This document shows, piece after piece, positions 24,257-27,866 of a stretch of DNA of 64,000 nucleotides (the stretch's first letter is position 1; each line of letters opens with the position of its first letter). Under the pieces are notes generated by a model. That model was not told where the DNA came from. It searched no databases and saw only the letters and a list, made by a program, of their open reading frames with translations. This stretch comes from Octopus sinensis (taxonomy: Eukaryota). A program made the translations under genes and the position numbers. The stretch is taken from contig NC_043018.1 of NCBI RefSeq assembly GCF_006345805.1, forward strand, positions 13,640,001 to 13,704,000, read 5' to 3'.

Positions 24257-24488
24257 CTACAGGTGAAAAGAAGAAAGTAAAGAAATGCTTATACATATAT
24301 AATTACATATTGTTGTAGATTCTGCGCTAACCTCATAAAAGAAAGATTGCACGCATGCGCACTTCATCCAGTAAACATTACAAACACAAGCATGGCCCTG
24401 GCAGCACGTGCTCTCTGGTGTCTTCTCAATGGGACTACATGACTGATGCCATCTGGCGCATATTACCGCTTGTCTCTTGCTTTTGGCT
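24257..24488 (-). CDS. K3 coding exon 3: AKSKR site, knottin QAVICARWHQSCSPIEKTPESTCCQGHACVCNVYWMKCAC, C-terminal tail
   Basis: TTATTTTCAG acceptor, phase 2. Spacing C-6-C-10-CC-4-C-1-C-6-C-1-C, identical to K1; tail ends CNYICISISLLSSFHL*. Spliced ORF is 118 aa. Confidence 0.92.
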
Positions 24489-25019
24489 CTGAAAATAAAT
24501 AAATAAATATTTCTTGGGAATAGGACGCATCGTAGTCTTTCCAATTATCAGGGTACATACCTGTATAACTGGAGAGATTGAAGAGTTTTAATGCAGGAAT
24601 AGGCTAAGCGTAAATGGAAACGCTTATGGGTATTGGAAGAAAATTCGGAGCATATGCGTAGCTAAGTGGAGGAGATGGAATTGGTAGAGATTTGTCACGT
24701 GTTAATCATGTGGACATGACTAGAAATGATGAAGGTTGTCTTTACAGGTGACTGCTTACAGAACCTGTCGTTGTCATTAGATATGTATTTCAATATATGA
24801 GTGGTGAAGCAAATTATAATTATACTCATAATCAGAATTTTTGTATAAGTTTGCCGATAATGATTGTTTTAACATACCGAACTACTTAGTAAAATCATTA
24901 ATTATTAATTAATTAATTAATTAATTTTACCCTTTTTTATTATTGATAATATAATTCTCTCCCTGATAGTAAACGCGTATACAGTTAATCAGAGTCGGGT
25001 AGATTCATTATTTTTTTCT

Positions 25020-25430
25020 CTTTATCTGCGTGAGTAGACAGCATCGGAAAATTTATTTAATATCGAGGAGTTGTGTAGACGGAGACTAATTAATGACTCT
25101 TTTAAGCATAGCTTGCATCTGCCTATCTTTGTATTATAAGGAAGAGCTACTCTTATACTGGACGAAGTCAAGGTATATTGCATGTTTTCTGATTTAAGAT
25201 AATGTATGTGTGTGGCCAATGATGTCGAGAATTTGTATTTTATCTTAGTGAAAGAACTTAAGTGAGCCCTGTATTGCCGTTTAAAATCTATGGTGATACT
25301 TATGTATGTCCTTGTTTGGTGTTTACTTGGTGTTTCCACAAGACATTCATAAATTACAATTTTACGCAGACAGAAGCCTCTAAGCGGGCATGCATTAGGT
25401 ATACGACAATTACAGGTTTTCCTTATTGTT
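25020..25430 (-). mobile_element. Penelope-like (Neptune-type) GIY-YIG fragment in K3 intron 2
   Basis: CNCRIPNACPLRGFCL, YISIT..FKRQYRAHLSSF, PY..CKLCLKE motifs. Confidence 0.85.
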
Positions 25431-25498
25431 CTACCAAACTCAGAAAAGAGATTTCACCAATACTAATAACGATACAATTGCCAATGTATAATTCTTAC

Positions 25499-25553
25499 CT
25501 TCTTGTCACGTTTTCACTTTGTCTTTCTAGCAACTCTTCAGGCAAAGCCAAAT
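25499..25553 (-). CDS. K3 coding exon 2 (propeptide DLALPEELLERQSENVTRR)
   Basis: TTTCCAG acceptor, AAG|GTAAGA donor; 55 nt. Donor flank (GTAAGAATTATACATT) is shared with K1 exon 2. Confidence 0.88.
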
Positions 25554-25649
25554 CTGGAAACATTATAAATAATTAAATAATTTAGGTATCCCAAATTTAT
25601 TCATAAGCTTGGCAGCTTGAGTAAAGAGACGAGCTACAGAAATGAGTGT

Positions 25650-27600
25650 CACATCAAAGGTGTCAATACTATTCACAATCAGTGTTGTCGTAGTAGTTTG
25701 GTAGTTTCTGTAAGTGGGTCAGCTCCACCGTGTGTCTGTACATGGACCTAGATCCCATCCCATGGATCCTGACATCAGATGTATCTCTTAGCTTGCATAA
25801 TTCGAAACAAAATATCATGCGCTCTAAACTGAACAGATGTTTCTTTGCATAATACAGTCTGGTAGAGACAATGTAGGTATCAGCCGCTCTCGCCCAATCG
25901 TTCACGGACAGTTTCTCAGAACTGCCTCGATTCTGAAGTGTTTGACATCATAATATTACTTGTGGTGAACGCCCTTCACCGTCTTCAACTTTGTGGTAAT
26001 GGTTCAAGCGCAAAGATTGGTGGAACCCTTGACATACCTAGCGCACGATAAAACGACTCGAAGAGATCCTCACTTAATTTGACCACTGAACAGACAGAGC
26101 TGTACATTTTAGTTATCCAAAGGAGGGCTTGAATTCGTAGGTCTTTAGGACAGTTACCAGATAACTTTACTCGACATTGTCGTAAACTTTAAAATTATCT
26201 AATCTTATCAGCATCCCACGAAATCCATATTTATTTCTGACGTCTGTGCGATATTTTATATGAGATAGCAATTATTCTAGATAGAAAGATCCTTCCAAGC
26301 ATCGCGAATTGTGCGAGTCTCCGATTACATTATGGAAGACAGATGATATTATCTCGACTAGTCTTCGTGAAAATCTTCAATTCCATGTTTATTTATCGAA
26401 TTTATTTAGATTCTACATTGGTAAAATCATCATTTCCCAATTCACACTATTGGCAATGCTTACCGTACGTTTCTAGCTGCTGTAGATGGTTAGCAAGACA
26501 GTAACAAGCTTTCAGGATATGTAGTAATACACTTGGTAAGGAAGACTATCCCGCTCCAACTATTTGCCGGAAGCGGTTCAGGGGACCCACCATCTTTATT
26601 GAAATCAGATTTTGGAAGCGCTCTAATTCTTGTGATCAACAGTCAAACAATCGGCTTGGCATCGATATCCACCGTCTTAGCTCGTCACGATAAGTTTTGT
26701 AAAATGTCACTAAAATGCCTCACAAATCTGCATGCAGTCCTTCAGAGACTTTTATTTCTTTTACTTGTTTCGGCCAGAGGCTGGGTCAGCAAACTTAATT
26801 TTTTGAAATGCTTCTTCTACGGATCTCTTCTAATCGATATACAAGCGTCTTCTCTATTCTCTCTTGCTGCTACTTTGCTAAATCTAACGTATGTTTCTGT
26901 AATTTCCCTCTTAATGAGTCCAACGCCTGTTGTCGATTGTTGCCCCTACTAGGTCTACTTAAGAAGTTTGAATATCAGTTCTCTGAAATTTATATGCGCC
27001 TTTATCTTCCAGTAAACGGGGTCCGATCTATTGGTTTTTATCTGTTGGCTGCACAAATCCCGAATTTGTGGCCTGCTAAGCCAATCATCTGAAACTAGAT
27101 AATTTATCCAAACTTGATTGGCTAACCTGATTAGTGACCTTGATTACCCATAAGATACTCCCCGAGTTACAGTTGGTACATTAACTAAATCAAAATGATA
27201 ACATTCAGTTAATTGGAAACAAAACTTTTAAACACACCTATCCGATCGAGTCCTTTCGCCCAAATCCTTACGAACATCAAAGTCATCCACTAGAACTAAT
27301 GAGTTACATGTTTCCGGAGAAAGTCTCTGCAGAAGTTAAGAGAAAACAGCTGACCACACCTCTCATTTGAATGTAAACTTGTCTGAAGGCATCGCTGTCA
27401 CCCTCACGTGATTATTGGCTTACTCTCTGGGCTTGGAGAGATTGTACTTAATTCTAGACCCAGGCGTATCCCAAACAGCAATGACATCGACTGAAAGAAA
27501 TCTTGTAGCCGGCCATAATATGTGCGTAACAGCTAAGTAGCTGAAAGGCTGGGCGGGTGTATAGATTGATAGCAAGTTAAAAATTCAATAATCTCATATA
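25650..27600 (-). mobile_element. Degraded Tx1/L1-type LINE filling K3 intron 1
   Basis: Decayed endonuclease and RT motifs (LVLVDDF, LIRLDNFKVYDNV, FALEPL, LSVNDWARAADTYI); many stops and frameshifts. Confidence 0.55.
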
Positions 27601-27796
27601 GTGGAGAGTTGCAAGGACTGGAAAGGTCCTTGCTGTTAGCCTTCTCTTGACATTTGACTGCGCATGAGTAACAAATCCACAACAATCCCACTCACTCAAA
27701 TTCTCTCTTGTTTCAACTTCTACTCACTCTTCACCTCCTCTCTTTGTCTCTTCTCTCTCAGTTTCCATCAAGAGGCAGGGAATATTGTGTACTTAC

Positions 27797-27866
27797 CTTG
27801 CTTGTGCGAAAAAGTTACTAAAATGAATGCAGAAATGTAGAAACAGCGAACATAAACAGTATTCAT
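27797..27866 (-). CDS. Knottin gene K3, coding exon 1 (signal peptide MNTVYVRCFYISAFILVTFSHKQ)
   Basis: Minus strand CGACAG|GTTCGCG-ATG...CAA G|GTAAGT; 70 nt, phase 1. Confidence 0.9.

Follow-up and report, generated by a model that had tools for sequence, protein, structure and literature searches.

The window analysed here, a 64,000-nucleotide (nt) stretch of octopus DNA (contig NC_043018.1, positions 13,640,001 to 13,704,000, forward strand), contains an intact gene, K3, on the minus strand at 24257-27866 and four further genes built like it (K1, K2, K4 and K6). The locus raises the question of how K3 came by a cysteine knot spaced exactly like that of K1, followed by a C-terminal tail: an initial annotation had regarded K3 as the membrane-anchored sister of K1, or else as an intermediate in losing the anchor. 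The reading favoured here, at a probability of roughly 0.7, is that K3 is an octopus-lineage paralogue of the CCWamide/agatoxin-like peptide (ALP) family, residing in a tandem cluster and carrying a decayed tail, and that the traits it shares with K1 are ancestral. This reading is carried by the profile similarity of K3 to molluscan CCWamides, by the exon structure of a tail-less octopus relative (LOC106867751) and by alignments of the tail among paralogues and orthologues.

Gene structure and precursor of K3

Three coding exons of 70, 55 and 232 nt, bordered throughout by GT-AG splice sites and interrupted by introns of phase 1 and then phase 2, encode a precursor of 118 amino acids (aa). It is composed of a signal-like N-terminus, a propeptide, an AKSKR site, an 8-Cys knot and a 31-aa tail. 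The features of the gene are as follows, in the direction of transcription (slashes mark exon borders).

27867-27880, minus strand: acceptor-like motif (pyrimidine tract and CAG/GT) abutting the ATG on its 5' side
27797-27866, minus strand: coding exon 1, 70 nt, signal peptide MNTVYVRCFYISAFILVTFSHKQ, with phase-1 donor CAAG/GTAAGTAC
25554-27796, minus strand: intron 1, 2243 nt, its first ~25 nt resembling intron 1 of LOC106867751
25499-25553, minus strand: coding exon 2, 55 nt, propeptide DLALPEELLERQSENVTR(R), with donor ...AGAAG/GTAAGAATTATACATT
24489-25498, minus strand: intron 2, 1010 nt, with a conserved donor flank (25483-25499) and a transposon-like relic of an open reading frame (ORF; ~25022-25423)
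24257-24488, minus strand: exon 3, 232 nt including the stop, with processing site, knot, tail and TAG
24473-24488, minus strand: (R)AKSKR processing site at the start of exon 3, to be compared with R/GKSKSHKNSC in LOC106867751
24353-24472, minus strand: 8-Cys knot domain QAVICARWHQSCSPIEKTPESTCCQGHACVCNVYWMKCAC, spacing 6-10-0-4-1-6-1
24260-24352, minus strand: 31-aa C-terminal tail VQSFFYEVSAESTTICNYICISISLLSSFHL, with nt homology to the K2 tail
24257-24259, minus strand: stop codon TAG, within a TGTAG pentamer
24181-24186, minus strand: ATTAAA, likely polyadenylation signal, ~70 nt past the stop

The signal peptide was assigned from hydropathy only; its h-region reaches 2.48 on the Kyte-Doolittle (KD) scale over the best 10 residues, and exon 1 shares 93-96% nt identity with its orthologues. 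Exon 2 closes with the phase-2 intron, which divides an Arg codon (AG/A) so that the border reads TRR/AKSKR, and contains an NVT sequon that is present in the window copy as well as in those of O. sinensis and O. bimaculoides. The propeptide as a whole reads DLALPEELLERQSENVTRR.

The acceptor-like motif before the ATG (..ACAGGTnCGnGATG and ..ACAG/GTGCGTGATG) is common to K1, K3, K4 and LOC106867751, and NCBI predicts upstream starts for the orthologues of K3 in O. sinensis and of K2 in O. bimaculoides. Because of this motif, the K3 transcript probably begins beyond 27866 with an upstream non-coding exon. The pattern suggests that all family members may possess such an exon, the 70 nt then being the coding part of a longer exon 1. 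At the other end of the gene, the ATTAAA is conserved in O. bimaculoides and differs by one base in O. sinensis; it is likely to act as the K3 polyadenylation signal.

The ORF within intron 2 (~25022-25423, minus strand) spans 133 codons, opens with CxC...CP..G.C and closes with CKLC. It looks like the relic of an invertebrate mobile-element protein, and a Pfam search with it returned no match.

Affiliation with the CCWamide/ALP family

Spiralian CCWamide is orthologous to arthropod ALP (Thiel et al. 2021; PMC8557429, section 9). For this protostome-wide family neither a receptor nor a function has yet been reported (PMC8557429, PMC13311285). Its hallmarks are a short precursor, in which a signal peptide, a non-conserved propeptide and a basic cleavage site precede a terminal Cys-rich peptide, further eight cysteines, an aromatic residue in the loop from Cys6 to Cys7, a C-terminal aromatic residue that is amidated, and three exons, with a phase-2 intron dividing a basic codon of the cleavage site (PMC8557429).

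K3 shares the precursor layout (hydrophobic N-terminus, propeptide, RRAKSKR, 8-Cys domain), encodes the 8-Cys peptide in its last exon and possesses introns of phase 1 and then 2, an arrangement that matches section 9 of PMC8557429 and the splice pattern of Lottia. Its cysteines follow the canonical mollusc spacing (C-6-C-10-CC-4-C-1-C-6-C-1-C), which is that of the CCWamides of Crassostrea gigas and Laevipilina (PMC8557429, supplement), and aromatic residues stand between Cys6 and Cys7 in K3 (NVYWMK) and are missing there in K1 (TSATEG). In profile comparison with 12 labelled CCWamides from the same supplement, hhalign yielded 96.7% for K3 alone (E 4.7e-10) and 97.4% for the K family profile (E 1.4e-11), with the FF of K3 aligned to the LW of the CCWamides. 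K3 departs from the family in two respects: a 31-aa extension occupies the place where the aromatic-Gly-basic amidation signal would be, and the gene belongs to a tandem multi-gene expansion with hypervariable loops, in contrast to a single conserved gene.

K3 displays the C-C-CC-C-C knottin framework, 12 of 21 relatives match Pfam PF02819 (Toxin_9) at E <= 0.1 (best 1.9e-12), and K3 itself reaches 16.2 bits (E 0.021) with PF02950 (Conotoxin), under the cut-off of 25.1. The sole matches in a PDB sequence search were entries of omega-agatoxin IV (E ~0.13). An AlphaFold2 (AF2) model of the knot only, built from 21 sequences, attained a predicted local distance difference test (pLDDT) score of 73.9 with a hairpin at residues 27-31/38-42; its Foldseek matches include spider Hc3a, asteropsin A, Magi4, ASIP, psalmotoxin and omega-Aga-IVB. 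Another model, of knot plus tail (8 sequences, pLDDT 60.7) gave meaningless Foldseek matches and was set aside.

Spider inhibitor cystine knot (ICK) toxins of the agatoxin type share the C-C-CC-CxC-CxC framework with K3, and omega-agatoxin IV-type peptides also continue for a short stretch past the last Cys, as seen in part in the PDB alignment. This stretch is lipophilic. K3 differs from the spider toxins in a tail ~3 times longer, in being an endogenous mollusc gene and in similarity scores below thresholds. The Conotoxin O-superfamily resembles K3 in its molluscan origin, three exons, conserved signal and pro-regions and variable Cys-rich last exon; the signal of K3 is unrelated, however, and its framework and intron phases are closer to CCWamide.

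These resemblances invite the reading of the cluster as a set of salivary-gland venom peptides evolving in the manner of conotoxins, with K3 as one toxin. A tandem arrangement with very divergent paralogue loops and weak Pfam matches to Toxin_9 and Conotoxin would fit it, and ALPs have been recruited to spider venom (PMC8557429). The knots of orthologues, however, evolve under purifying selection (ratio of non-synonymous to synonymous substitution rates, dN/dS, 0.3-0.8), hydrophobic tails of 30 aa are atypical of injected peptides, and knot, ICK or cysteine-rich peptides go unmentioned in the text, as distinct from the sequence files, of a survey from 2026 on proteins secreted by cephalopod salivary glands. 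A venom role is hence improbable.

No paper was found in the literature searched on octopus knottins, on conotoxin-like or agatoxin-like octopus peptides or on cephalopod CCWamide expansions, and none on natural GPI (glycosylphosphatidylinositol)-anchored cystine-knot peptides or naming the LOC identifiers of the orthologues. A tailed octopus cluster of putative CCWamide type thus appears to be undescribed in the literature searched.

A tail-less relative and the ancestral characters

LOC106867751 is a CCWamide-like gene devoid of a tail and is located at 36.23 Mb of O. bimaculoides CM046622.1, ~7 Mb apart from the cluster at 29.13-29.17 Mb. Its protein does not differ between O. bimaculoides and O. 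vulgaris (100% identity), and precomputed data assign a Toxin_9 domain to it; a protein of Argonauta hians was recovered by profile search as a further tail-less relative. The gene comprises four coding exons, one of them an extra propeptide exon. A 70-nt first coding exon is followed by GTAAGTAC and a 55-nt second exon by GGTAAGAAGTAT.., and the last exon again begins within a split AG/A codon (R/GKSKSHKNSC versus R/AKSKRQAVIC in K3) and displays the 6-10-0-4-1-6-1 spacing. LOC106867751 is probably the CCWamide gene proper of octopuses, from which the cluster would have arisen. A comparison of its 3' untranslated region (3'UTR) with the tails of the cluster revealed no homology.

The exon lengths, donor flank and spacing shared by K1 and K3 all recur in LOC106867751, and the spacing recurs in mollusc CCWamides; they therefore represent ancestral states. 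Among the members of the cluster K3 is the most conservative, and it is no special partner of K1.

Relationship between K1 and K3

The similarities between the two genes on which the initial annotation rested were borne out at the level of sequence. The knots of both minus-strand paralogues are spaced 6-10-0-4-1-6-1, both have the 70- and 55-nt exons proposed, the flank of the exon-2 donor is identical at 17 of 17 nt (GGTAAGAATTATACATT), and the loops are unrelated as had been stated, with matches at 3 of the 28 non-Cys positions. The K1 gene and the flanks compared are located as follows.

3203-6902, minus strand: K1, with the 70-nt exon at 6833-6902 and the 55-nt exon at 5177-5231
5161-5177, minus strand: conserved start of intron 2 in K1
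14390-14406, plus strand: conserved start of intron 2 in K2
25483-25499, minus strand: conserved start of intron 2 in K3

The same flank matches K2 at 16 of 17 nt, and K2 likewise has a 55-nt exon 2. Gene-wide blastn of K1 against K3 revealed no shared intron sequence beyond a 22-nt donor flank, which is present in K2 too; K2 and K3 additionally share the tail. Nucleotide identities in exon 1 and exon 2 amount to 60 and 51% for K1-K3, 57 and 47% for K1-K2, 60 and 49% for K2-K3, and 67 and 58% for K1 and the outgroup LOC106867751.

The phylogeny that had been proposed as a check was run on exons 1-2, alone and with 160 nt of flanking sequence, and did not resolve the relationships among K1, K2 and K3. 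Neighbour-joining (NJ) bootstrap values for K1+K3 were 44.5% on the exons and 60.8% with flanks, those for K1+outgroup 45.4 and 35.8%, respectively.

That K3 is the true sister of K1 and still GPI-anchored, K1 representing the same gene type after loss of the anchor, is on this evidence unlikely. It would accord with a relic of a tail in the 3'UTR of K1 (described below), which has S-I-S, the frame and the final stop as in K3 and is slightly nearer to K3 than to the K2 types, with the NJ frequency obtained with flanks, and with the small residues VSAES preceding the moderately hydrophobic C-terminus of K3. Against it stand the ancestral nature of the shared characters, the low bootstrap values, introns without homology, and loops and a tail of K3 that are as near or nearer to those of K2-type genes than to those of K1; moreover, the K3 tail falls under the hydropathy threshold given below, and the O. 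bimaculoides orthologue appends 16 polar residues. Of the two alternatives initially offered, the intermediate in losing the anchor fits better, and the evidence does not establish K3 as the anchored sister of K1.

At the start of intron 2, ~16 nt (GTAAGAAnTATACATT) are near-invariant among paralogues with near-saturated exons, are recognisable in LOC106867751 and have counterparts at both O. bimaculoides loci. They may constitute a splicing-related element.

Probable decay of the C-terminal tail

K3 retains 31 aa past the last Cys. The tail had been described as shorter and less hydrophobic than those of K2, K4 and K6. The first statement fails, since these measure 33, 34 and 30 aa, respectively; the second is correct, the best 15-residue KD value being 1.69 for K3 versus 2.87, 2.49 and 2.57. 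Across the K2, K4 and K6 types the 15-residue maxima range from 2.2 to 3.2 and the 19-residue maxima from 1.62 to 2.48, except for P0011 (1.21). K3 reaches 1.29 over 19 residues in the window and 0.88 in O. bimaculoides, and hence lacks the strong C-terminal hydrophobic segment expected of a GPI signal when judged by the classical span threshold of 1.6, a hydropathy heuristic rather than a validated GPI predictor. Small residues suitable as a candidate omega site are present in the window copy (VSAES) and vary in the orthologues (KFRSGA, KATSGA).

Alignment of the nucleotides past the last Cys revealed one homologous tail in K1, K2, K3 and K2b (an O. bimaculoides paralogue described below), with 50 nt at 78% between K2 and K3. 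In K1 the tail persists as a fossil.

3122-3202, minus strand: K1 tail fossil SDTPVTNLHNYIFMNQSISPFSDLPL followed by a stop, in frame in the K1 3'UTR and stop-free up to this second stop

The stop TAA of K1 directly follows CKCA, and the fossil continues in frame after it, aligning with ..ICNYICISISLLSSFHL and the stop of K3 and with ..IHNYICIGICLL.. of K2. From this in-frame continuation it follows that K1 once had a tail, which a nonsense mutation removed. The fossil is 63-69% identical to K3 and 58-62% to the K2 types, K3 and the K2 types being 65-70% identical to each other; it has S-I-S, the reading frame and the position of the final stop in common with K3, and H-N-Y in common with K2. 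The resulting affinity of K1 and K3 is weak and is the sole evidence leaning that way.

The C-terminus of K3 differs among all three copies. At the position of the window TAG, O. bimaculoides has TGG and reads on for 16 mostly polar residues, and O. sinensis carries an 8-nt deletion and reads on in a different frame. A premature stop in the window relative to the O. bimaculoides TGG was considered and overturned by the alignment of K1-, K2- and K3-type tails: every K2-type gene has the TGTAG pentamer, and the K1 fossil has TAA at the K3 stop position. Since TGTAG is family-wide, the window stop of K3 is probably ancestral, and O. bimaculoides and O. sinensis lost it independently. A donor site inside the K3 tail (GAG/GTTAGC) was rejected, as it is not conserved in the orthologues.

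Tails of the K4/K6 subfamily share a mean identity of 49% (up to 80%), compared with 35% for their knots, the 8 invariant Cys included. Judged by these comparisons, the tail looks functional in the K4/K6 subfamily and degenerate in K3, and decay of the K3 tail is a supported interpretation of the sequences.

Alternatively, the tail could be a C-terminal propeptide or sorting signal removed during maturation, all K peptides then being soluble knottins of ~40-45 aa. The K3 tail does start where CCWamides end, three tolerated C-termini would suit a discarded segment, and K1, if functional, works without a tail. Yet in K2, K3, K4 and K6 no conserved dibasic or otherwise recognisable cleavage site separates the tail from the last Cys, and tails more conserved than knots in the K4/K6 type exceed the need of a spacer, so that removal of the tail as a general rule is to be regarded as rather doubtful.

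Orthologues and selection

Orthologues of K3 are LOC118767484 in O. sinensis, at 73% identity, and LOC128250510 in O. bimaculoides, at 70%, the gene models of both being automated predictions. They were the sole close relatives of K3 retrieved from the protein database, which does not contain the proteins of the window itself. Both loci display the same three exons, GT-AG sites and all 8 Cys, with the K2 orthologue arranged tail-to-tail with K3 a few kb downstream, as in the window. The orthologues found carry no annotation beyond "uncharacterized protein".

Synonymous divergence (dS) between window K3 and the two orthologues ranges from 0.15 to 0.7, on which ground the window DNA was taken to come from an octopus other than these two species. 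By the Nei-Gojobori method, with 3-14 substitutions per partition, the dN/dS of the knot is 0.30-0.42 in all three pairs, from which the K3 knot is judged to be under purifying selection. The K3 tail yields 1.23-1.49 for the window versus each orthologue (13-14 non-synonymous versus 3 synonymous substitutions), and the K2 tail 0.34-0.37 for the window versus O. bimaculoides and O. sinensis.

These values bear on the possibility that K3 is a silent or decaying copy without function. The tail looks unconstrained, and K1, K4 and K6 of the window have no one-to-one annotated counterparts. The ORF, splice sites, 8 Cys and synteny of K3, however, are kept in all three copies, as is the low dN/dS of the knot, which renders loss of function very improbable.

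The processing site is less uniform. Gln directly follows KSKR in the window, as initially noted; the O. sinensis copy reads KSKR/Y, and in O. bimaculoides the site is altered to KSKG-H, with only RR remaining upstream. A pyroglutamate N-terminus is accordingly possible for the predicted window peptide, without being conserved.

The O. bimaculoides and O. sinensis loci examined did not yield an orthologue of K1. In O. bimaculoides the corresponding place is occupied by a K2-type paralogue on the opposite strand to K1.

O. bimaculoides CM046622.1, L003 2764-7744, plus strand: K2b (P0004), extra paralogue

K2b combines a signal, propeptide and tail of K2 type with K3-like loops and the 6-10-0-4-1-6-1 spacing; its signal peptide does not differ in protein sequence from that of the K2 orthologue next to it, with which its exon 2 shares 79% nt identity. 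On this comparison K2b is a mosaic without counterpart at that place in the window.

Weighing the evidence

Several observations weigh against the affiliation of K3 with CCWamide/ALP and the decay of its tail. An amidated aromatic C-terminus (W/F-Gly-basic) is absent, VQSFFYEV... running on for 31 residues; the match of K3 to Toxin_9 (19.6-19.8 bits) falls under the gathering cut-off of 21.3; and the top Foldseek matches of the knot model, all of them knottins (TM score 0.5-0.64, probability <=0.87), have E >= 0.4. The core of the tail (SISLLS.F..L) is kept in all three K3 copies, so that a role is still possible. For the pair O. bimaculoides-O. sinensis, dN/dS is 0.46 in the K3 tail and 1.59 in the K2 tail, and because of these values and the small counts the relaxed constraint of the K3 tail is suggestive and not significant. 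K1+K3 is, furthermore, the most frequent NJ grouping once flanks are added. Finally, K3 is known in this species as a predicted gene.

The gene cluster around K3

The remaining members of the cluster in the window are the following.

13197-19032, plus strand: K2, 8-Cys gene of the same build as K3
38417-46369, plus strand: K4, 8-Cys gene of the same build as K3
58997-62382, plus strand: K6, 8-Cys gene of the same build as K3
48979-49042 (within ~48540-49110), minus strand: orphan copy of the K4/K6 exon-1 module, inverted and truncated, exon 1 only
38363-39243 and 39618-39866, plus strand: 5' module segments of K4, near-identical to those of K6
58943-59804 and 59795-60043, plus strand: 5' module segments of K6, near-identical to those of K4

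Five 8-Cys matches to a loose pattern and two to the exact 6-10-0-4-1-6-1 spacing were found in the window, compared with 0 in 200 simulations under a first-order Markov model, which places the 8-Cys pattern well outside what chance would give. When the exon-3 alignment was used for an exhaustive profile search, 14 relatives were detected, nearly all of them "uncharacterized" proteins of O. bimaculoides encoded on one chromosome (a word-indexed protein search had supplied three only). Members of the O. bimaculoides cluster are LOC128250510, 512, 514, 516, 517, 536, 537, 540 and 541. From these matches, the K cluster is apparently large and octopod-specific.

K4 and K6 are 95-97% identical over ~0.9 kb of their 5' module, which comprises exon 1, intron 1 and exon 2, the orphan copy included. 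Their exon-3 knots are nevertheless very different, also in loop lengths, despite the shared module, which indicates that the 5' module was recently duplicated or gene-converted, separately from exon 3. Because such modules are copied independently of exon 3, exons 1-2 are a poor guide to the history of exon 3.

Intron 2 of K4 contains a 4.3-kb (CATA)n microsatellite of ~1100 copies (40825-45165), which accounts for the extreme GC skew of this region, and (AAT)n forms long arrays at 1876-2688 and 17707-17982. Intron 1 of K1 (6128-6353, minus strand) and intron 1 of K2 (13629-13853, plus strand) share a 226-nt element at 94% identity; with weaker copies in intron 2 of K6 it probably represents an interspersed repeat. 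ARAGORN did not call a tRNA-like stretch that lies downstream of K1 (~2950-3030), and Rfam and tRNA scans of the window detected nothing.

Proposed function and significance

The K3 precursor would enter the secretory pathway and be cut by a prohormone convertase after KSKR to yield a 71-aa peptide, in which the knot may serve as binding module. The strongly hydrophobic and better-conserved tails of K2, K4 and K6 probably hold the knot on the membrane of the producing cell, putatively through a GPI signal or a short membrane-spanning segment. Since the K3 tail is too polar, evolves near-neutrally and varies at its C-terminus, K3 is most likely released, or loosely associated with the membrane. 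Should the K2, K4 and K6 tails indeed anchor, lynx1 (of the GPI-anchored Ly6/uPAR prototoxins, three-finger modulators of receptors) would offer a purely functional analogy, that of a disulfide-rich, toxin-like module fixed to the membrane of the very cell that produces it, its fold and ancestry being unrelated; K3 would be the weakest anchoring candidate.

A more far-reaching scenario, tentative at best, is that octopuses turned a soluble CCWamide/ALP into tandem membrane-tethered knottins, of which K3 and K1 represent two stages of reversion, with a decaying tail in K3 and a stop-truncated tail with 3'UTR fossil in K1. If true, these peptides would be natural "tethered toxins" acting in cis on channels or receptors of their own cell, akin to lynx1 but with an ICK fold.

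The interest of the locus lies mainly at the family level, the role of K3 as a special partner of K1 being largely explained away. With LOC106867751 as outgroup, a rooted frame is available in which ancestral and derived characters can be separated. Within it, the loops of the knot diversify, and some members conserve a newly arisen hydrophobic extension of the C-terminus, which is decaying in K3 and truncated in K1. The octopus expansion offers a natural experiment on the binding targets of the scaffold and on the conversion of secreted into cell-bound peptides.

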